This document shows, piece by piece, positions 14,655-52,991 of a stretch of 64,000 nt of DNA. The position numbers and the translations under genes are program-made. The notes below the pieces were generated by a model. That model ran no database searches. It saw only the letters and a program-made list of their open reading frames with translations, and was not told the origin of the DNA. The DNA is from Paragordius varius (Eukaryota; Animalia; Nematomorpha), in the NCBI GenBank assembly GCA_964247055.1, contig OZ176051.1, forward strand, positions 11,966,001 to 12,030,000. The letters are read 5' to 3'. Numbering within the stretch: the stretch's first letter is position 1; every line of letters starts with the position of its first letter.

Positions 14655-14948
14655 TTACAATGTAATATTCATTTTAAAATGACCTTGAGGAGGTATTTCT
14701 TTAAATACTCCGGCTTCACGCATGCGTATGTAATCGCGATCAGCATCATAGTTCCTAAAAAATAAACCACAATTTTACTGATAAAATTCTTTTATGGCTT
14801 TCTTAGTTGCCCGACCAGTAAAACACCAAAACATATATGCTATCCCAGATGAAAGAACCAAGCTTAGCGGTACACACACTTGATAATAACGGGCACAAAG
14901 GCCTCGCATTCGAGCCGGTCTCGGGATTCGAGTGTTTTTATCAGCCAT
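14655..14948 (-). CDS. COX6C: Cytochrome c oxidase subunit 6C
   Basis: Exons 14948-14779 and 14754-14655 give MADKNTRIPRPARMRGLCARYYQVCVPLSLVLSSGIAYMFWCFTGRATKKAIKEFYQ|NYDADRDYIRMREAGVFKEI. This has the COX6C hallmarks MRGL, a single TM segment, and FY.NYD..MR.AG.F. The last few codons could be alternatively spliced. Confidence 0.9.
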
Positions 14949-16448: not shown

Positions 16449-16640
16449 ATCGCTTCTCTGGCTTATTAGCTATGATCGATTGTGTAGTATCTGTTCTTAT
16501 CAGCTTAATATCTGATATGGTTTCTCATTGAAACCCGTGATATTAAATCATTTTTTGTAGGTTTTGGGGATCGCTCTAGGCTTGCCTATCAATCCTCAAA
16601 CGGGTCAACCTGGTATTGCACTATATCCAGGAGTGGCCCA
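16449..16640 (+). ncRNA. U2: U2 snRNA, full length (divergent)
   Basis: Contains the 5' ATCGCTTCTC, branch-point recognition GTGTAGTA, stem IIa TATCAG..CTGATA, Sm site ATTTTTTG, stem III, and stem IV with loop TATTGCAC, in canonical order over 192 nt. Confidence 0.97.
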
Positions 16641-16661
16641 ACAATTATTATAAATAAAATA

Positions 16662-17657
16662 GATCAAATGGGAATTCATCGATTCCTCTCCCATATTAAT
16701 AGTTGATAATAAACGACTCAGTATCGAACAACGTTCTTCAGTAGTTTCCATGCTCAGACGCTCTCGGCGTGCGCTAAAAGACGCAGAACTCCATCACTTT
16801 GCCCTACAAGGACGAGTGATGGAATGCGTAGCCGCCGATCGAGCCAGCCATTCCTTTCTCTACACAGGAGAACACATGAGATTTCGTGATTGGAAATTCA
16901 TCCATCGCGCCAGGCTCAATCTCCTCCCCACAAATTCCCGCAAACACGATCCCACACTTAAATGCCGACGGTGTGGCAAAGACAATGAAACCCCCGCCCA
17001 CGTCCTCAATAATTGCTTGAAAGAGAGCAACTTAATCACCAAGAGACACAACCTTATTGTAAATAGGATAAAAGACGCACTACCATCTAATTTCGAAATC
17101 ATCAACGAGAATGAGGTAGTTGACTCATCTCGTCTTCGTCCTGACCTAATCGTTACCGATGGAACATCGTGCTTCATCATCGATCCGACGGTACCATATG
17201 AAAATAGGATTTCCTCTTTCCATCATGCTGCAACAAACAAACTTATCAAATATGAATCCATCGCCAATGGACTACGAGAGCGCTTCAACGATGTCGAAGT
17301 CATACCAATCGTCGTTGGATCTCTGGGTTCCTGGTACTGCAACAATGACGTGATATTCGACAGAATTCCAATGAAGACCCCAAACCTCTTAAAGAAGCTG
17401 ATCATATCAGACGTCATCAAAGCGTCATGCGATATGTTTCACTACTTTATGAGTGGACGAAATGAAACAAACAATACAAACATCTCTTCATAATTTATGT
17501 TTTTTTTATTTTATATTATGCAATTTGCATCATTGTTCTTCTACAATTTCATCCATATTCACTCAATAATTGTTAGATAGGCCACTTGCATTTTCGTATT
17601 CTCTTTTCAGATTCTCAATCTACAAATATTAAAAATATATATTACTCTATAATAAAT
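16662..17657 (+). mobile_element. Utopia-type RLE non-LTR retrotransposon, lineage A, 5'-truncated
   Basis: Uninterrupted ORF 16750-17493 with a CCHC knuckle (CRRCGKDNETPAHVLNNC) and RLE motifs RHN, RPD, IIDPT and K..KY. The 3' UTR ends AATAAAT, joined to U2 nt 40 (TATCTGTTC), matching the U2-targeting habit of Utopia. Confidence 0.93.
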
Positions 17658-17810
17658 TATCTGTTCTTATCAGCTTAATATCTGATATGGTTTCTCATTG
17701 AAACCCGTGATATTAAATCATTTTTTGTAGGTTTTGGGGATCGCTCTAGGCTTGCCTATCAATCCTCAAACGGGTCAACCTGGTATTGCACTATATCCAG
17801 GAGTGGCCCA
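17658..17810 (+). pseudogene. U2: U2 snRNA 3' fragment (nt 40-192) downstream of a Utopia insertion
   Basis: Identical to 16488-16640. It lacks the 5' 39 nt. Confidence 0.95.
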
Positions 17811-17870
17811 ACAATTATTATAAATAAAATAATTCAGAATATCTTATCCCTTCACTTTTTTTAATAATTT

Positions 17871-17987
17871 CGTCAGCCAACTGTTTAACATAATTTACAG
17901 CATTAACACGCTTATTCAAGTACAGTAAACGCCTAAAAAAGACCTCTTTAGAGGTCGTATCAGATATTAAGCTGATAAGAATAGAGA
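17871..17987 (-). pseudogene. Variant U2-like 3' fragment (class B), copy 1
   Basis: TCTCTATTCTTATCAGCTTAATATCTGATACG (U2 stem IIa), then hairpin GACCTC-TAAA-GAGGTC, a U6 tract and two further hairpins. It directly follows a Utopia-A 3' end. Confidence 0.7.
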
Positions 17988-18177
17988 ATTTATTATAAAG
18001 TTATATAAATTTTTAATATAGATTAAGAATCTAAAATAAGAATACAAAAATGCAAATAGCCTATCTAACAATTAAAGAATGAATATGGATAAAATTATAT
18101 AGGAACATTGATGCAATTTGGGTAATATAAAAATAAAAAAACATTAATTAAGAAGAAATGTTTGGATGTGTGGCCCC
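17988..18177 (-). mobile_element. Utopia lineage A 3' UTR remnant
   Basis: The reverse complement aligns with the 3' UTR at about 17480-17657 and with 22573-22747. Confidence 0.85.
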
Positions 18178-21100
18178 CTTTTGGTTATATATTAATTATC
18201 CGGGTGATTAGGAATTTATTTATTTCCATTCTTTAATCCTTTGGTCCATCTAAATTTCTTTCCAGTATTATATATTGTTTATTTTTATAGATATGATATC
18301 AACCAACATTATTAGCTCCAACAACGTACAAATCATGTTTCGCCTTACAATAAGTGATAATGATAATCAACCAGTGTCCTGCAAGACAACCTTCTGCCAT
18401 ACCTCTGTCACCACGGTCAATACTCAAAGCCATCTATCATTCTGTGTCAACCCGTCGACAACTCCAACACCCGATATTGGCTCTCTCTATGAACACCAAT
18501 TCCCTTCACTCTCTTCATCTCAGTTCTACGACAACGTGTACACAGCTACCAATCAGTCATCCAATCAGGCCAAATCTCCCAGCTCAAACATTAAACGCAA
18601 GACCATCCTTGATCTTGCCCATCCAGCCAACAAAATGCTTAAGATAAATAATAATGATGATGATAATGATGGCGACCTATTGGAGGTGATGCCACATCAA
18701 CCTACCCTGCAAGACAAAACCCTATCCTTCTATTTCCCTTTACCGAATCACTTTTTATGTCCGTTTGAATCTTGCAATCATCAATTTCGTTGTAAATCCT
18801 GGACTGCCCAGAGACAGTCTCTTCTACGTCATATTAAGCTGGTCCATAAAGAACTAATCAAAATAGTTAATATTTGCAAACCTTGTAACAAAGTTTTATC
18901 TATTCACCCAAGTATACATATGAAAGAGTGCATTTTTGCGTCCAAATCTCCTATTTTCCAAATGCCTCACGCATGTGATGCGTGTGAAATGTCGTTTCCC
19001 AAGCGCATGTCTCTCTTATCTCATAAAAGGTCTCATAATCTACCTCCTCATCCTCACAGTAAACCGTTAAGTTTGTCAAACCTCCGATTCAATCCGTCTA
19101 ATAAGCCTAAGGTTGTCGAGTCATCTCCAACCCACAGTAAACTTTTTTGATCCACCCAGCTCTCCAGTTAATTCTTCTCCTACCAAAGTGAGTGGGACCT
19201 CAAACATCATTGGTAAGGGACATGAAGGCAATAATTTCAGTACGGATATTAATTCCAATATTCTAAATCCCAGTAGTTCGGTAAACAAAAATTATTTTAA
19301 TTACTTTTCTCAGAATGAAGTCTCTTTCTCTAATCGTTTTACAATTCTTGAGGAGAGTATTGATGAGGAACCCACTTCATCGGTTACTCTACCTACACCA
19401 AATAAAAGTTTTAATAAATCATCTGCTTTAAATAAAAATACTTTTCCTTTCACTAATTTTAATAACCTTCTTGACTCCCACGACGAGAATTCCGACTGGA
19501 AGGATATTTGTTCTTTAATAATCTCTATTCAAAATGCAATATCTCCTCCCCGGGCTGATTATAATAAGTCTAAAAGTTTGGTTCATAAAGATTTAAATAT
19601 TCGAGCATGTATAAGAAAAATAGGAAAAAGGCTATAAGATTAATCGTTGATGGCCCTCCATCCCTCTGTAAAATTAATAACGAAGATATAACAAATTATT
19701 TTAACAATACAATTGGCAAAAAATCTGAGCCTATTAATTTTAATTATTCTAATAATTCTGTCCCTTTACTTGATTTTATTCCCTTTTCAGCATCTGAAGT
19801 TTCTGATAAATTAAGAAAAGTTTCTAACAGCTCCCCTGGTCCTGATGGTATTTCATATACCAAATGGAAGCAGGTGGATCCCAAAGGTATTCTTTTATCT
19901 AAAATTTTTAATTTGTGTTTAAGTCATAGAATGATTCCTAATCATTGGAAAGTAACTAAGTCAATCTTAATTTCTAAAAAAAAGGGAGACCCTTCTCTTG
20001 TTTCAAGCTGGAGGCCCCTTTCACTAAGCAATACTATTTATAAATTATTTACTGGCCTTATTGCCAACCGAATTTCTAAACATATTTTAAAGAATAACTT
20101 ATTATCATCAGCCCAGAAAGGATTTATGCCGGCTGCTTTGAGCATAATTATATTTTAAATAAATCAATTTCTGATGCTAAACATAATAAAAAAGATATTT
20201 TTGTAACCTTTATTGATATCACTGCTGCGTTTGACTCGGTCCCTCACCAGCTGATTTTTGAATGTCTCCCTAATTTTGGTATAGATAATAATATTCAAGC
20301 TTTAATTAGGGATATTTACACAAATTCATGTACTCAGTTCTTTTCCGCCTCTGGGTTAAACCCATTCCTTTCTTGTCTGGCATTAAACAGGGGTGTCCAA
20401 TTTCTGGCCTTCTTTTTAATTTGTCAATCGATTCTGTGTTGAGATCTATGGTGTTTAATGGTCACAATGTCCTCGCTTATGCTGATGACATTGTTTTATT
20501 GTCTGACTCTCCTGAACGTCATCAAGTTGGGCTCAATTTGTTAGAATTTCTTATTCATGATATTGGTCTTTCGATCAAAGCTGAGAAGTGCAATAGTATT
20601 TCTATTGCTTCTTGTAGTCCTGTTTTTAAGATTGGTGAAGTTGTCGTTCCCTCAATCGGTCTAGGTGAGTTTGTTAGATTTGAAAGCCTGTAGGTCTCAA
20701 TTTCATTAATCCCGTTCCTTCTACGGAAATTGTGGATAAAATACATAGTTCTAGCCTCCTCCCTTGGCAAAAGCTAGACGCTATTAAAACTTTTTTTATC
20801 CCACTATTTCTCACCAGTTGAGAAGTAATGAGCTTAAAATGGTTACAGGTGAATATCTAGATAAAAGCTAACTAAAGTGTTCAAACAAATATTAAATCTT
20901 CCAAGAGACGCCACTAACAATTATATTTTTGGCTCTCGTAATAAGGGCGCCTTAGGGATGCCCCTATTCCGAGATGACATTAATATATTTCGTGTGGATT
21001 CCGCTTTTAAATTACTTACTAGCTTAGATCCTTCTATAAGAGTTTCTGCTCTAGAGGAACTTAAGGTTTCGGCTAGCTTCCGTTTTAAGGTTCGATTAGA

Positions 21101-22223
21101 TTCTATAATTCCCGATCAATTAGGCAAATATTTGTCTGGTTATGAGAACCCTCTTGTCTCAAATCCAGCTAATAAATGCCAAAACATTTGGACAATAGCG
21201 AGAATTGCGTCTGAATCTCTCAAAATTTCCTGGTCTTTTGATGATTCTTTTCAGCCTACAGTAATTACAGACTCTAAAATCTCCCAAGACAATCGCTCAG
21301 CTGTTGTTTCTATCCTTCGATTTTATAAACGAAAGCTAAAGGATACTGAGCTACACCATTTTGCTTTGCAGGGTCGGGTGATGGAGTGCGTTGCTGATGA
21401 TAAGGTCAGTCACCATTTTCTTTACAATAATAAGGATCTTCGCTTCAGAGACTGGAACTTCATCCATCGAGCGCGGCTCAATCTCCTTCCAACGAAAATG
21501 CGACTCAGGTCGTCTGAACAAATGTGCCGTCGCTGCGGCAAATCGAAAGAAACCCAAGCCCACGTTTTAAACCACTGCCTCAAAGATGATAATATAATAA
21601 CCAAAAGACACAACGTCATAGTAGACTTGATTAAAGATAATCTTATATCAAATTTCAAGTTAAGTGAAAACCAAGCCATCGATTCGTCGAGAGTACGCCC
21701 TGACCTCATTGTAACAAATGGCACTGATTGCTATATCATCGATCCCACAGTGCCGTTTGAAAACAGGCTAGAATCGTTCGAAACGGCGTTCAACAATAAA
21801 TTAATGAAGTATAGCTGTATGGCTCAACAATTACAGGAAACATACAGCAACACCCAAGTCATTCCAGTTGTTGTTGGGAGCCTCGGCTCATGGTATTCGA
21901 AAAACGATGTTCTTTTTGAGAAGATCAGGTTCCGATGCCCTAACCAACTAAAGAAATCAATAGTTACAAGCATAATAAAATCTTCAGCCGACATGTACCA
22001 CATGTTTATGAGCGGTCGAAATTCCCTCATAGACAACAACCCATCAAATGCATTTTTGTAATATTTTTTATATATATATTTTTTTTATTATATTTTTTTT
22101 CTATATTTATATATAATAATTTTTTCTTTCTTCCCCCTTGTAACTTCCCCATGCCCAATATTGTTGCGTAGCACTTTTCTTCATATATTCTAAATTGTAT
22201 TTCTTATATATATTAATAAATTA
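18178..22223 (+). mobile_element. Utopia-type retrotransposon, lineage B, near full length, frameshifted
   Basis: Three N-terminal zinc fingers (CPFESC..HIKLVH, CKPC..HMKEC, CDAC..HKRSH), RT motifs (PGPDG, WRPLSL, QKGF, GIKQGCPISG, YADD), a CCHC knuckle and an RLE, spread over several frames. The 3' end joins U2 nt 40. The 5' boundary is approximate. Confidence 0.93.
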
Positions 22224-22376
22224 TATCTGTTCTTATCAGCTTAATATCTGATATGGTTTCTCATTGAAACCCGTGATATTAAATCATTTTTTGTAGGTTT
22301 TGGGGATTGCTCTAGGCTTGCCTATCAATCCTCAAATGGGTCAACCTGGTATTGCACTATATCCAGGAGTGGCCCA
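22224..22376 (+). pseudogene. U2: U2 snRNA 3' fragment (nt 40-192) downstream of Utopia B
   Basis: 153 nt with two C>T differences from the full-length U2. Confidence 0.95.
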
Positions 22377-22440
22377 ACAATTTTATATACAAAATAAATT
22401 AATCCCTTCACTTCTTTTAAATAATTTTAATATAAATTAT

Positions 22441-22572
22441 CGTCAACCAACTGTTTGAAATAATTTACTACAGCATTAACACACATTTATTCAAGTACAA
22501 TAGTTTACCGTGAACGCCTAAAAAAGACTTCTTTAGAGGTCGTATCAGATATTAAGCTGATAAGAATAGAGA
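22441..22572 (-). pseudogene. Variant U2-like 3' fragment (class B), copy 2
   Basis: Homologous to 17871-17987 with indels in the distal hairpins. It follows a Utopia-A 3' end. Confidence 0.65.
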
Positions 22573-25500
22573 ATTTATTATAAAGTTATATAAATTTTTA
22601 ATATAGATTAAGAATCTGAAATAAGAATACAAAAATGCAAGTGGCCTATTTAACAATTAAAGAGTGAATATGGATAAAATTGTATAGAAACAATGATGCA
22701 AATTGCATAATATAAAAATAAAAAAACATAAGAAGAAATGTTTGGATTGTTGTTTGTTTCATTTCGTCCACTCATAAAAAAGTGAAACATATCGCATGAT
22801 GCTTTGATGACGTCTAATATAATCAGCTTCTTTATGAGGTTTGGAGTCTTGATTGGAATCCTGTCGAAGATGACGTCATTGTTGCAATGCCAGGAGCCCA
22901 GAGATCCAACGACGATCGGGATGACCTCGACATCATTGAAGCGCTCTCGCAGTCCAGTGGCGATTGATTCGTACTTGATAAGCTTGTTTGTTGCTGCCTG
23001 AGTAAGGATAGCCGTTCATATGGTACCGTGGGATCGATGATGAAGCAGGATGATCCATCGTGACGATTAGCTCCGGGCGCAGGCGGGATGCGTCAACTTC
23101 TTGATTCTCGCTGATGACTTAAAAGTTTGGTGTGTCTCTTGGTTATTAGATTGCTCTCTTTTAAACAGTTATTTAGAACGTGGGCGAGGGTTTCGTTGTC
23201 TCTGCAACATCGTCGACATTTTAGTGTTGGGTCGTGTTACCGAGAATTGGTGGGGAGAAGATTGAGACTGGCGCGATGAATGAATTTCCAATCACGGAAC
23301 ATGTGTTCTCCTGTAAAAGGAAAAGAATGGCTGACCCGATCGCAGCTACACGTTCCATTACTCGTCCTTGCAGGGCGAAGTGATTAAGTTCTGCATCTTT
23401 TAGCGCACGCCGAGTGCATCGAGACTATGGAAGAACGTTTTTCGATACCGAGTGGTTTATTATCAACTATTAATGTAGGAGCGGAATTGATAAATTCCCA
23501 TTTGATCTTAAGGATCTTAGATGATTTACCTGCCTCTGTCTAAGGGTTTTGAGCTTTGTTGCTAGGGTTTATAACGTCCGGATTGTCTTTGCCGGAATGA
23601 TAGGAAGCCATATCCTCATGAATTGGGTTTTTAACTTTTAATCTATAAGCTGAATCTATTCTAAATATATGCATGTCATCCTTTAGGAGAGGCATGCCGA
23701 GAGCACCTTTGGGCCTGAACCCGTAGATATAGTTTGTGGTGGCGTCTCTTGGAAGAGCCAATATTTGTTTGATTACTGTAGTCAATTGTTTATCTATTGC
23801 ATCGAAATATTGTAATTGATTTGATTAAAGCGCAGTCTGTGCATGAGTCTGGGATAATAGAATGTTTTTATAGCGTCAAGCTTTTGCCAGGGGGCCAGCA
23901 TTTTTGCGGGATTTCAGTATTTGCGGCAGGTCTTTCAATGTCCAACCCAACCGGGTTACCCAAGAAGTTTGTATATTCTTGGTGTTGTAAGGTTCTAATA
24001 ATGCCATCATCAATCGAGAACTGGTAATTGGAATTAAGGCAAAGGGTGACACACTTGGAGGAATTTATGGTAAGACCGATTTCACTAAGGAGGGATGTTA
24101 GTCGGTCAAGCGCTGCTTGGTGGAGATGTGGGTTTGGATAAGCAAGCCATATCATCCTCATACGCAAGTATTTGGTGACTGTGATTACTCATTTTCTCAA
24201 TTATTGAATTAACGGCAACGTTAAATAAGGTGTTGAGTGAGCCTGTTGGATGCCGGAGAGGAGCGGGATTTGGTTTGTCAGTCCATGGGATGTCATGAAA
24301 GCTGTGGATGAGTTTGTATAGATATTTTTAAATGATATTAATGATTAATGAAGCTTTCGGATAGGCCGAAAAGGGTGAGGCCATTGAAGATGGCTTGGTG
24401 TGGAAGGCTATCGAAGGCAGCAGCTATATCGCATGTTATGTACAATGGAGATTTACTGTGCACCGCTGTTTTTATTTGAAGCACCCATCGTAGGGGAGGA
24501 AACCCTTCTGTTTGGGAGATATGAGATTATTGTTATTGGTGTATTGGATGATTCGATCTGATAAAATGGCTGTATTTGTTAAAGAGATTGGAGGCCACCC
24601 AATAATTTTGCTCAAATCTTAGTTCTTTTTGGGAACCAAGATCGAGATGGAATTCCAAGCATCAGGTATGCGTTGGTGATTGAGACAAATATTGTAAATT
24701 GCTGAGAGTAGTTTACCATTATTATCTATTTTTAACGATTTGTGATGCCGTCATTGCCGGGGGAAGACTTTGGCATTTTTTTCAGCTTGTCGACTATTGT
24801 GTTTGGCAAGATTAGCTCCATGTCTGAAACATTGTCAGGGAATGTGACTGCAGGTATCGAATTTAGCGTATAAGAACGTTTGATTAAGGATTTAAAGGGA
24901 GATTCAATCACTTGGGGATCTATTTCACATACTTGAGCGGGCCATCCATGATAAGAAGCATCGCCTTTCATCAATTGAATCGGTATAGGTTTTGTAGGTA
25001 ACGTGGGTTAGTATTTTTAGTTGAGAATTTCTTGGGATTGTTTTGAGAAGAACGAGGAGAATTGTGGTAACGGATGATATCATCCAATATTTCCTCGAAT
25101 CTGGCCCAGGGATCCGGGTGAGAACTGATATTATTTAATTCGTTGATAAAAACAAGTGGTTTGTCATTATTATCAGGTATCAAGTAGTTTGACCGGCCTT
25201 CCAAAGGAGGGGTAATAGAGTGTAGTGTGTCTGGTTCAACTTCGCAAATATTCGAAATGGATGTAGCATCATCCTCGATTGAATATTGGAATATTGAAAA
25301 CTTATTATTGCAGGTGATTGTATCGCTAGCGTTAAAAGTTTGTTGGGGAAACTTGCGACAGTGACTTTTAACTGGGGATTTCTGTAGAAAGAGTTTGTTA
25401 TCAGGATTGAATTTGGTATCAAGAAGCGAGATCGCTTTCTCATGATGGCGTAATGGAGCATTATAGGAACGAATATGATGATCCAGATTACTTTTTTGGG

Positions 25501-25578
25501 ATATGTATTGCCGCAAATGTTGCATTTGTGCGGGAATAGAGTTTTAGGGAGCTCGTGTCAGTTAGGGCACGATTGTAA
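22573..25578 (-). mobile_element. Utopia lineage A, degenerate, reverse orientation
   Basis: Minus-strand fragments of ZnF3 (PHKCNIC..HHIRS), RT (PGNDG, YADED-like motif), LALPRDATTNYIYG, CCHC/RLE and the 3' UTR, ending at the class-B U2-like target. Many stops and frameshifts. Confidence 0.88.
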
Positions 25579-25582
25579 CTTT

Positions 25583-27097
25583 GAATGTCCATTAAAAATT
25601 GTAATCATATATTCCGAGCCAAGAAATGGACGGCTCAACGCCAATACCTTCTGAGGCGCCTCACCCTAAACCACAAAAAATTTATGATAAAAGTCCGGAA
25701 TTATTGTAAACCTTGCAATTTAGATGTGGAATGCTATCCCTCATCCCAAGATTTCATGTCACTCCATAGACTGACAAACCAAATCCCGTTCCTCTCCGGC
25801 ATCAAACAGGGCTGCCCACTCTCTGGCATCTTATTTAACGTCGCCGTTAATTCAATAATTGAGAAATGAATAATCACAGTCACGAAATACTTGCGTATGC
25901 GGATGATATGGCTTGCTTATCGCCAAACCCACATCTCCACCAAGCAGCGCTTGACCTACTCACATCCCTCCTTAGTGAAATCGGTCTTACCATAAATTTC
26001 TCCAAGTGTATCACCCTTTGCCTTAATGCCAATTACCAGTTCTCGATTGATGATGGCATTATAAGAACTTTTTAACACCACGAATATACAAACTTCTTGG
26101 GTAACCCGGTTGAGTTGGGCATTGAACCTGCCGCAAATACTGAAATCCCGCAAAAAATATTAAATCCCAATCTGGCCCCCTGGCAAAAGCTTGACGCTAT
26201 ACAAACATTCTATTATCCCAGACTCATGCACAGACTGCGCTTTAATCAAATCAATTATAATACTTCGGATGCAATAGATAAACAATTGACTACAGTAATC
26301 AAACAAATATTGGCTCTTCCAAGAGACGCCACCACAAACTATATCTACGGGTCCACAAAGGTGCTTCAGCATGCCTCTTTTAAAACACATGCATATATTT
26401 AGAATAGATTCAGCTTTCAAACTGCTAACCTCCCGCGACGAATCAATTAAAACAGAGTCGCTTGCCGAGCTCTCAAAAACAATAGCCTATGGATTAAAAG
26501 TTAAAAACCCAACTCCGGAGGATATGGCTTTCTATCTTTCCGGCACATACCCGACGTTACAAACCCTAGCAACAAAGCTCAAAATCCCTGGACAGAGGCA
26601 CGTAACATCTCAGTTCCGTAAGATCAAATGGGAATTTATTAATTCCTCTCCCACATTAATAGTTGATAATAAACGACTCGGTATCGAACAACGTAGTCTC
26701 GATGCTCAGACGCACTCGGCGTGCGTTTGAAGATGCAGAACTCCATCACTTCGCTCTGCAAGGACGAGTAATGGAATGTGTAGCTGCCGATTGGGCCAGC
26801 CATTTTATTTACAGGAGAACACATGAGATTCCGTGATTGATTTATTCATTGCGCCAGGCTCAATCTTGTCCCCACCAATTCTCGAAAACACGCAAGTCTG
26901 ATGTCGACGATGCGGCAAAGATAACGACACCCCCGCTCATGTTCTCAATAACATCTTGAAAGAGAGAAATCTAATAACCAAGAGACACAATCTAATTGTA
27001 AATCGGATCAAAGAGGCGCTACCACCAAACTTCCAAGTCATCAGCGAGAATCCAGAAGTTGACGCATCTCGTCTGCGCCCTGACCTTATAGTCACAG
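25583..27097 (+). mobile_element. Utopia lineage A pieces: ZnF1-2 segment fused to an RT-to-RLE fragment
   Basis: 25583-25746 encodes C..KNC..KWTAQRQ..H..CKPC. It joins through CTCATCC to the RT region (GIKQGCPLSG, YADD) and runs to RPDL near 27080. No 3' UTR or U2 follows. Confidence 0.85.
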
Positions 27098-35636: not shown

Positions 35637-36071
35637 TTATTTATTATCAACATCATGAGTGCGTACAGAATCCGATACAATTTTCCATTTATCACCTTCC
35701 GCAATAAGAATAAAATATTGATGAAATCCAAACGAATCAATTTTTTTGGTATGTTTGAGTTCTTGATCATATTTAACTAATCCGTGAACATATAGAGTTG
35801 CACTTTGCTGACCATTTGTAACAATAGGGGTTATGGGTAAAACATTTAATGCATCGGTTTGATGTTCACTATGAGGAAGTTTTTCATAAAACTCCTTAAT
35901 AGAATCTAAACCCTATTATTAAACAAATCATACTTGATATTGATTACCGTTCCATAAAAGAGTTGCATTTTCATGATATAATTTGTAAAGAATATGCCTT
36001 TTCTTATCGACAGTAGAATAAAATACAGGAACAAAGGCTTGACATGAATCAAGTAAGTTTTTTAAATCCAT
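35637..36071 (-). CDS. NXT1: NTF2-related export protein (p15, NXT1/NXT2)
   Basis: Exons 36071-35934 and 35912-35637 give MDLKNLLDSCQAFVPVFYSTVDKKRHILYKLYHENATLLWNGNQYQ|GLDSIKEFYEKLPHSEH..FHQYFILIAEGDKWKIVSDSVR. This matches the NXT motifs Y..MDKRR..L..LY...ATL.WNGN, LPSS and WKI.SD. Confidence 0.93.
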
Positions 36072-44500: not shown

Positions 44501-47500
44501 GAGATAATTGCCCAGTTTGATGGTGGTAAGGAAAAAATCTTTACAAAATACAAAATAAATGGGTAATTTTAAAACATCTTTATAATAAAAATTTATGATT
44601 GTATATAATTATCTACTTAATAAAACCGGCCTTGATTTTTTGAAGGCAATTGACCTAATAGAAAATATACCCACAAACATTTCAAATTAAGCCTAGTATC
44701 TGGGACTAATTTAACTCATTATTCAAATAAAATTGTGGGAGAATTTATTATATTTTCTGTAATTTTAAACAATTCGATTTGTGAAAATATTTAAAAATAT
44801 AGGCAATTTTTTTATTTTCAAAAACGAATATTATTTTTTGTGTAAATTTTAGGCGCAAATATACTAAAAATGCCAAACCTGATATCTGTGAAAGGACACA
44901 ATAAAGCAAAAACCGATTTGAGTTGCATGTACAAGGAAAGTGTGGAATAAACAAAGAATACGTAAATCAGGTAATATACTATAATTATACACATATATAT
45001 GAGATAAAAATTTGAACAAAAAAAATATTCAAATATTGTAAAACAAAAAAAATTAAAAATTTCAATAAATGATACAGTTTTGTAAAAAATTACAGGTTAG
45101 GTGGTATATGAAAATGATAAAATTTATACCGGCATATTTGAAGAAGTACCAAACAAGCATCATAAAGACTGTCATGAATAATACCATAAACAGTACGGTT
45201 GTAATGGAAAATGCATTTTCATCCACTATTTTCTGAGCAGCTTTATTCACATTGGTCGTCATCTTTTGACCTTTTATAAGTTTATTATTTATGACAATTT
45301 TATTTATGCTTTCATCATTTTTATTATGTAAATTGTCAAGTGTAACTCCATTAGTTATAAGTTTATTTGGCATGGCTTGTAAATGATTGATGTTTGAGGT
45401 TGGCTGATTAAAACAAGTATTTGATTGATGACGTGAAAAATCTTTAAATCTATATATCATAAATATATATTTTGTAATGTAAGAAAAGCGGGGTTACATC
45501 ATTTTGCTAAAAAAACTTAAATTTTGTGACAAAAGACAGGATGGTATCTCAAACTTAGTAAAAAAAATTTGGATAGAGACAATTAAAAGAATATATTCAA
45601 AAAACTAAATGCGCAAAAAATCTTATTATCAGTATTCTCAAAACTTTAGAATTTGAAGAGTTAAGGGTCAAAAAATGAAGCTATATTAATAATAACAAGT
45701 ACGTAAAAAATTAACTTTCTTATAACTGATGTAAAAATGTGTAAAATGTAAATCACGATCTTATTAATGTGGCGACGAAATTATAATATTATAAAAGTAT
45801 TATTATATTCAATACTAATTTATTACCTTACGCTATGAAATTTATTGATCCCTAAGTAATTAGATTTAAAAAAATTTTTATAAAAATAAAAAATTAAAAT
45901 ACTTTTGAAAGTAGGTTCGTCCACCCATATATGCTCCGACAATCGATATCAAAACTATAATAAAGGCTAAAAGTAGGGGTCCCATATCCTTTGCCAGCTT
46001 TAGCGGTTCAATACTGAATGGTGTGACTAAGGGAGAATCCTTTTTTCAAAATTCAATATACATGTAATAATTGATCATTTATTTAACATTTGTTTATAAT
46101 TATTCATAGTTTAAGGATGAATTTAGGTTGTATAAAACACGCATACATACTGGACATCAATAGTATCAAATCAATTTTTAACAATAATTTCTTTTTTGTT
46201 AATAAAGCTTAGAAGCTATATATAAAACTTTACTATATTTAGAATAAAATGGAAATTGAGAGTTTAAAACCAAATCATTTTCCATAATTCCTGCATAAAA
46301 CACGATATGAAAAACTCATCGCTTGAATTAAAATACGGAGAGAATATTGGAAGATTGATTAGTGTATAAAACCATAAAATAGTTATATTTCAGTTCAGTT
46401 TCCCAAAAACCAATTTTGAAAATCAACCAAAATAATTTCTAGTCTGAAAAAAATCAAGTTAAAAAAAAAGGTTTTCCCTGTCATGCAAAACGATTAGTTC
46501 AAAAATGTTTTTCAAAACATTTTTAAAAAACATTTCCCAAAAAACTACCCAAAATTTATTTATTTATCATATATTATAATTAAAATTTATTTATTTATTT
46601 TTTGTAAAGTAAAGGGCGTCCAATTCAAACCCATTTATTAATCAGGTGCCATATCAAAATCATATGCAAAAATTTAAATGTGTTAAATTCCAATTTATTT
46701 AGCTATAATTTGTGGGATAAAAAGAAAATGAAAGAATATTGCAGATAATCAAAATCAAGTCAACTCTAAAAATATAAAAATTAATGTTCATTTAATAATC
46801 CAATTGTTACAAAGTATTAAAAAATCAAAATGCATTAAACTTTTGATATGAATTAAATTACTATTAAACCTTAATCCTATATTGTAATGGTAATGAACGG
46901 ATTGGTTATGTTTTGTAATAACAGTTGTTAAAATCCGTAATATAATGATAAAGGATAATTAAATACAATTAAATGTGAAAACTCCAAGTCAAATAGTTGT
47001 GTCGTACTGATGAGTGCTAACAAGCACGAAACTAGTCTGCGATTACTATTGACGAAGGGTTTCACATATCGTTTATAATTTCTATTTATACTCTCATTTA
47101 ATTGTATTTAATTATCCTTTATCATTATATTACGGATCTTAATCCTATATATTTATTCATAAAGAATGGCAGAAGCTTAAATTATTAATGATATACTAGT
47201 AGGAATTATGACAAAATAATTATCACTATAATATTTTTCAAAAAATATTTTAACATTTTTTTAATTTCTAGACATTATCATCTAGACCCCTTTTATAATC
47301 TAATAAAACAAACAGCTGGTTCTTCTAAAAATCTTTTTAAATAATTCAAATTTCGCGGCGACCTACTACGGGCGAAAATTTGAAGTGATTTTTTATATTT
47401 TTAAAAATATTATTTAATGTTCCGCCATAGAATGCTTATTATTTAATTAAGCCCATAATTAAAATCGCTCGTACTACCCCAAATGGCAATAAAGTGTTGA

Positions 47501-52356: not shown

Positions 52357-52991
52357 TTAAATTAATCCCAAGTCTTTGAGCGTATCGTCCAAACGTTCAT
52401 CCTTTTTTGGTAAAAAATTTAAAATTAATATAGCAGACAGAAAATAAATAGACATGCATGTAAAATATATTTGAATATACCTCCTGCAATACGTCCTGTT
52501 CCGTTATTGATTTTAAAATGCATTTTTTACTAGACTCCTGCATTTCTCCACCAACAAATAATTCATCAAGCATAAAATATGCTTTTTCAAAATTAAAAAT
52601 AATATCCAACTCGCATACCTAACATAATATTAAAACAATATTTATACGCTTCCAAAATATTTATCGAGTAATTCAACGTATCGATGAATAATTTCCAGAT
52701 ACAATAATTCATTATCATCAGGCTCAATTGCACAACAAAAATAAAGGCTTGCGTATCTAATTGATTAATTATTTTTCGCATACCGTTTATATACGATTTT
52801 AAGATCTTTCCAATCAAGAAAATTACACATTTTAGGTTTGCGAACAATAATCAATGCCATAAGCTCTTTAATAATTTTCCGTTTTTCTTTTTCGGATTTA
52901 GCGACATACCATTTTTGCAATCGTACCTTACCCTGGCGACTGAAAAGTAGCATAAAATGCATCTTTAAAATTAATAAATATATATTACCAT
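52357..52991 (-). CDS. AP1S: AP-1 complex subunit sigma
   Basis: Exons 52991-52989 (ATG only), 52962-52784, 52756-52648, 52618-52481 and 52401-52357 give [55 protein letters not shown]. Confidence 0.96.

Follow-up and report, generated by a model that had tools for sequence, protein, structure and literature searches.

The nucleotides of U2 snRNA that lie between its side of U2/U6 helix Ia and the branch-point recognition sequence (or branch-site reader), referred to here as the linker or spacer, form part of the 5' strand of U2's branchpoint-interacting stem-loop (BSL). For human U2, the pairs of this stem-loop are G25-C45, C28-G42, A29-U41, G31-U39 and U32-A38 (PMC13019295). The genes that encode U2 are also the targets of Utopia, a group of RLE non-LTR retrotransposons (Kojima and Jurka 2015, PMC4640811), for which no target-site duplications were reported in arthropod families and duplications of 20 bp in reptile families (PMC4640811).

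The U2 gene described here lies in a stretch of DNA of 64 kb (the window, meaning the whole stretch that was analysed) and, as judged from sequence features, heads a cluster of Utopia-type retrotransposon insertions. Comparable loci are those of the nematode Steinernema carpocapsae (L122) and the tick Ixodes hexagonus (L123), which like the window hold ecdysozoan U2 sequences into which retrotransposons have inserted, either within the branch-site reader or at its end. In both of these species, however, the 28 nt at the 5' end of U2 are those of the consensus (distance 0) and the linker is AAA, whereas in the window this part of the gene is at a distance of 5 from the consensus and the linker is GAUU.

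Results

Comparison of the window with Rfam by cmscan identified a full-length U2 snRNA gene (RF00004) of 198 nt at 16449-16646 on the plus strand. The match scored 155.4 bits against a gathering score of 46 (E 3e-32) and extended over model positions 1-192 of 192, in agreement with the initial annotation, which had called this a full-length U2. Every stem was scored by cmscan, stems III and IV with compensated pairs, and stem-loops IIa, IIb, III and IV were all present together with the Sm site AUUUUUUG (16550-16557, plus strand), which was recognized both by cmscan and by reading the sequence. The predicted fold of the gene had a z-score of -2.8, and its loop IV, UUGCAC, is common to Steinernema and to the environmental contig L016. 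The 29-nt 5' segment of the gene occurred once in the 64-kb window against 0 occurrences expected, which excludes chance; the gene at 16449 provides the single U2 5' end of the window.

The 5' part of the gene (16449-16489) reads ATCGCTTCTC-T-GGCTTATTAGCT-AT-GATC-GATT-GTGTAGTA, and our re-reading of the sequence agreed exactly with the string, including GATC-GATT, that had first been reported for it. Relative to the vertebrate-type consensus of RF00004, the gene shares AUCGCUUCUC, GCU, GAUC, GUGUAGUA, stem-loops IIa, IIb, III and IV and the Sm site, but it is 198 rather than 192 nt long, has one nucleotide more in lower stem I, a U-A pair for a C-G pair, a bulge AU for AA, and a 4-nt linker GAUU for the 2-nt AA. 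The 5' end AUCGCUUCUC (16449-16458, plus strand, as are all the elements of the gene given here), which is the U2 side of U2/U6 helix II, was unchanged and was invariant in all eight of the U2 genes that we aligned. It is followed at 16459 by the extra pyrimidine (U) of lower stem I, which cmscan placed as a 1-nt insert after model position 9. In stem-loop I (GGCU-UAUU-AGCU, 16460-16471) the pair C14-G19 is replaced by U-A in the cmscan alignment, so that the swap is compensatory, as had been claimed; the GCU of helix Ib is kept, and the predicted fold retains stem I with one more U-A pair. The helix I bulge at 16472-16473 was likewise correctly described as AU instead of the consensus AA, the cmscan alignment showing a24 changed to U, and this change turns the model pair u9-a24 into a U.U opposition that cmscan flagged as non-canonical. 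The U2 side of helix Ia, GAUC (16474-16477), is unchanged, and between it and the equally unchanged branch-point recognition sequence GUGUAGUA with GUAGUA (16482-16489) lies the 4-nt linker GAUU (16478-16481), in which cmscan aligned the excess over RF00004 as two inserted nucleotides ('uu') between model positions 30 and 31. This U2 is thus altered directly 5' of its branch-point recognition sequence, as the initial annotation proposed. A different register, in which the second GAUU replaces GAUC in helix Ia, was set aside; it would give a 6-nt bulge, no spacer and one wobble pair more.

Divergence from other U2 genes was found to extend beyond the linker. The 28 nt preceding it had an edit distance of 5 to the consensus, as against 0 or 1 for the same part in 104 of the 112 environmental U2 sequences listed, and 0 in Steinernema. 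By this comparison the entire 5' third of the gene is an outlier, not the linker alone. In the alignment of eight U2 genes, the residues of helix II, helix Ib (GCU) and helix Ia (GAUC) and the branch-site reader were identical to those of the seven others, and the 5' changes spared every U2 residue known to pair with U6 or the branch site. Since helices Ia, Ib and II keep their U2 residues, no covariation in U6 is expected, and a comparison with U6 would be expected to be uninformative and could not discriminate between explanations.

In order to compare the linker with those of other U2 genes, we scanned metagenomes for GATC followed by 3-8 bases and the branch-site reader, a pattern that by design finds no 2-nt linkers. 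The scan gave matches on at least 120 contigs, and 125 matches were listed. An AAA linker in an otherwise consensus U2 5' end was present in 112 of these 125, and the other linkers among the matches listed included GAA (four), TTT (two) and CAA (one). An Rfam check on a sample of the metagenome matches returned full-length U2, for example in L025 (182 bits) and L016 (169 bits). The linker was also AAA in the tandem U2 array of S. carpocapsae, in the U2 5' halves of I. hexagonus and in the U2 of an ENA assembly (L127), all three of which were chosen as contigs that encode relatives of the window's retrotransposon; contigs L124-L126 (Rhipicephalus, Centruroides and Xenia) and L128 contained no clear U2 5' part. 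Two intact U2 genes had a linker as long as that in the window, namely AAAU in the environmental contig L008 (159 bits) and AAAA in contig L121 (171 bits), which corresponds to 1 in about 120 of the U2-like metagenome matches listed plus one GTDB contig. Unlike GAUU, these two linkers are A-rich extensions of AAA, and the stem I, bulge and 5' end of both genes are those of the consensus. The linker GAUU itself was found in no other sequence among the metagenome matches listed and the loci compared, which form a biased sample, and the AU bulge was absent among the U2-like 5' parts of the metagenome matches listed, in which the bulge was mostly AA and in a few cases UU or UA. A pattern scan of viral contigs with the branch-site reader gave 0 matches.

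The GAUU variant is real and rare, but the baseline against which it was first set was too narrow. Among the bona fide U2 genes compared at the sequence level, spacer length ranges from 2 to 4 nt, and the invertebrate baseline in this sample is 3 nt, not 2. The 2-nt spacer of the RF00004 consensus is absent from the gene at 16449-16646, which has four nucleotides (GAUU) in its place; since some other bona fide U2 genes have spacers of 3 or 4 nt, a 2-nt spacer is not a defining feature of U2. The initial annotation was right that the linker has 4 nt where the Rfam consensus has AA, but AA is not the general invertebrate state. Its further statement that this segment is normally nearly invariant does not hold for length, as the 3-nt AAA is common and intact U2 genes with 4-nt linkers exist; that statement rested on a vertebrate-type reference. 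Relative to the likely ecdysozoan baseline, the linker change in the window is one of +1 nt plus substitutions, rather than +2 nt.

Several other features of the compared contigs were observed. The environmental contig L046 contains a U2-like gene (2492-2682, 75 bits) with about 18 nt from its first GATC to the branch-site reader, a gap that includes a second GATC, and this gene is either a pseudogene or a case of a much larger spacer insertion. In L008 (2367-2473 and 4394-4587), U2 is linked with a U6atac gene about 2 kb away, and in the environmental contigs L058 and L066 a 5S rRNA gene lies within about 1 kb of U2. The tandem U2 genes of Steinernema (L122, AZBU02000009.1, 13004-17800) have a spacing of about 1.19 kb and stand beside a Utopia-like element. 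Two downstream copies of this array have small duplications, which in one add GT to the branch-site reader (at about 16594) and in the other repeat a stem I segment (at about 17794), and at about 5385 of the same contig there is a U2 5' half that is cut inside GUAGUA.

We also examined whether the linker of the window gene has a place in the predicted folds of U2. In local folding, a BSL-like hairpin formed through pairing of the linker's GAU with the AUC that immediately follows GUAGU. Its pairs, G-C, A-U and U-A, adjoin an 8-nt loop, and its predicted energy of -0.4 kcal/mol equals that of the Steinernema sequence. When the whole RNA was folded, C-GAU paired instead with the 5'-terminal AUCG, so that stem I was extended. 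These predictions suggest that the spacer change is at least compatible with the alternative folds of U2 itself.

Downstream of the intact U2 gene come about 15 nt of shared 3' flank and then a 5'-truncated retrotransposon copy at 16662-17657 (plus strand, start approximate). The ORF of this copy (16750-17493), which has a C-terminal zinc finger and a restriction-like endonuclease, parallels the C-terminus of the full-length copy and gave a sub-threshold match to PF15518 (PD-(D/E)xK-type endonuclease; 24.8 bits, cut-off 27). The truncated element ends exactly at the U2 cut site, at 17657, and is followed by a U2 3' part (17658-17816, plus strand) that starts just 3' of GUAGUA and duplicates the 3' part of the intact gene. 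The longer copy (18170-22223, plus strand, borders approximate) encodes in several ORFs a zinc-finger N-terminus, an RT (Pfam RVT_1, 60 bits; zf-RVT weak and below its cut-off) and a C-terminal endonuclease, and a second U2 3' part (22224-22382, plus strand) stands directly after its 3' end. The Rfam matches to U2 in these places run from 17635 to 17816 and from 22199 to 22382, but they are U2 sequence only from 17658 and from 22224-22226 onward. Throughout the U2 sequence, the part at 17658-17816 shows no difference from the corresponding part of the intact gene, and the part at 22224-22382 differs from it at two positions.

The architecture of these elements is the one described for Utopia, in which N-terminal zinc fingers, an RT and, at the C-terminus, a zinc finger with an endonuclease are followed by U2 sequence from 3' of GUAGUA (PMC4640811). 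In the window, RT, C-terminal zinc finger and restriction-like endonuclease were all found, RVT_1 with 60 bits and the other two below their Pfam cut-offs, and the copies have precise 3' junctions with U2 at 17657 and at about 22223. On layout and insertion site the elements appear to be of Utopia type, their relatives being assigned by best-match similarity. The closest protein relatives of the retrotransposon were elements of ticks, a crayfish, spiders and a nematode (Steinernema) with 27-38% identity, and three of these elements stand next to U2 5' halves whose cut falls inside GUAGUA or at its end. A word search with the N-terminal ORF found no homologue, and an exact look-up of the 247-aa ORF was without a match. 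Unlike the duplications of 0-20 bp in the paper on Utopia (PMC4640811), those that bracket the window insertions are direct duplications of about 174 bp (16488-16661 and 17658-17831) and about 510 bp (17658-18167 and 22224-22750). Because the U2 cut site is exactly where these duplications begin, an intact U2 is left upstream of them.

Further repeats were noted around this cluster. A second, different U2-like piece lies on the minus strand at 17945-17990 and at 22526-22570, with an identical stem IIa and a different stem IIb, followed by UUUUUUAGG. This piece starts at the same cut site, after the element end ...ATAATAAATT, is arranged tail-to-tail with the U2 3' parts, and matches the Rfam model with 32 bits over positions 39-84, with no U2 3' domain after it. 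More degenerate copies of the same kind of retrotransposon occupy both strands of 22900-26750, and their RT-like and zinc-finger ORFs at 23540-25525 (minus strand) and 25585-26730 (plus strand) suggest an inverted arrangement; these copies account for the rise in GC at 16-28 kb. Elsewhere in the window, at 46996-47047 (plus strand), Rfam gave a sub-threshold match to Hammerhead_HH9, which reached 26.7 bits (E 0.021) where the gathering score is 52.

The window also contains very short introns, which had been the premise of a proposal that the longer linker provides slack for small lariat loops. GT-AG introns of 21-29 nt are indeed present in COX6C, NXT1 and AP-1 sigma, with lengths of 24 nt (14755-14778), 21 nt (35913-35933), 29 nt (52619-52647) and 27 nt (52757-52783). 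In five introns read by eye, 6-10 nt separate a UUAAU or UUUAU motif from the 3' end, so that the predicted branch A would likely lie 15-19 nt from the 5' splice site. A heuristic finder of tiny introns returned mostly false positives in the transposon cluster and was used only to list AT-rich candidates. The NXT1-like gene (35640-36060, minus strand) consists of exons of 46 and 91 aa separated by a 21-nt intron, and a word-based protein search with the 91-aa exon 2 found no relative; an exon so diverged fits a fast-evolving lineage.

Discussion

On the features of its sequence, the gene at 16449-16646 is most likely the working U2 of this animal, or one of several. The explanation that we favour, with moderate confidence, is that this is a structurally intact and ordinary working U2 in which lineage-specific changes have been tolerated in unpaired or compensated positions. 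On this explanation, the 5' 33 nt in this fast-evolving, AT-rich animal carry lineage-specific changes at positions free of pairing constraints from U6 or the intron, these being the extra U of lower stem I, the compensated stem I pair, the bulge A changed to U, and the spacer GAUU for AAA or AA. The longer spacer would then be a tolerated variant of a segment that is 2, 3 or 4 nt long in different eukaryotes, and at most the spacer change would affect the intramolecular folds of U2. As the pairing residues, the branch-site reader, the Sm site and the 3' stem-loops are unchanged, the RNA should work as any U2 does; both this function and the neutrality of the spacer change are what we infer. 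Furthermore, the U2 3' parts that flank the retrotransposons match the intact gene, so that this type of gene is what the retrotransposon now targets, as would be anticipated for the main U2 family.

The outlying 5' region could also mean that constraint is relaxed on this particular copy, and a minor variant or dead gene, with a working U2 of canonical 5' region elsewhere in the genome, is an alternative that we regard as unlikely. It would account for the edit distance of 5 in the 5' region and for the one stem I pair of the Rfam model that is broken (U.U), and it would suit the position of the gene in a retrotransposon-ridden cluster with duplicated U2 pieces. However, the changes avoid all residues that pair with U6 or with the intron and one of them is compensatory, which is not the pattern of random decay. 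Unchanged pairing residues together with a compensated change speak for an RNA that is under selection and against a copy in decay, and the compensatory change in stem I points to selection on the RNA structure itself. Moreover, the 3' 160 nt retain all of their stems and the Sm site, and the U2 3' parts flanking the retrotransposons match the gene, one exactly and the other except at two positions, so that the gene at 16449 belongs to the U2 family that is being targeted.

A second alternative holds that the longer linker is an adaptation, providing slack in the catalytic core to close lariats of about 15-19 nt in introns of 21-30 nt. The reasoning, which is topologically sensible, supposes that the pairing of the U6 ACAGAGA with the 5' splice site, helix Ia, the linker of U2, the branch helix and the loop of the intron make up a closed ring, so that added linker length could take strain off a very short loop. 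The tiny introns of the window and the predicted positions of their branch A agree with this idea, as does the rarity of 4-nt linkers (1 of about 120 U2-like metagenome matches listed, plus the one GTDB contig). However, of the two ends of the branch helix, the linker lies at that of branch A, and not at the one that faces the short loop. Linkers of 3 nt are present in a tick and a nematode with ordinary introns, and a 4-nt linker is present in the environmental contig L008, which also has a minor-spliceosome U6atac gene and whose intron sizes are not known. Heterotrich ciliates have very short introns. A 2026 comparison of ciliates, heterotrichs included, found the U2 branch-site motif strictly retained, and it does not describe the linker (PMC13685798); the fully conserved branch-site reader of this group thus also speaks against the idea, as far as that motif goes. 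A link between the 4-nt spacer and tiny introns is not supported by the comparative evidence from these sequences, and we consider the adaptation improbable. The broader version, in which the 5' third of U2 was remodelled under selection, whether for introns of 21-30 nt or for dodging retrotransposons, and in which the GAUU gene is the sole expressed U2, appears to us just as improbable.

That the diverged 5' 33 nt arose from conflict with U2-targeting retrotransposons, the target DNA being altered while RNA function was kept, would fit the many site-specific insertions at the U2 site in the window and the confinement of the changes to about 40 bp upstream of the cut site with functional pairings spared, but it is very improbable, as the variant gene is itself the 5' partner of the cluster's insertions and hence not resistant now, the target bases read by the element are not known, and Steinernema and Ixodes host such elements yet keep a consensus 5' region.

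As things stand, the value of this analysis is mainly corrective, in that the spacer between helix Ia and the branch-site reader has 2 nt in vertebrate-type U2, whereas many invertebrates and environmental eukaryotes have 3 nt and a spacer of 4 nt is met with occasionally. With a spacer that varies from 2 to 4 nt, a change in length alone is no signal of special function. If the GAUU gene were the only U2 expressed, it would mean that the tether from helix Ia to the branch helix can be lengthened in a metazoan, and the animal would then offer a natural test case for the geometry of the spliceosome with introns of less than 30 nt. For the genome itself, the gene at 16449-16646 provides a useful anchor for annotating the U2 family amid its many retrotransposon-split copies.
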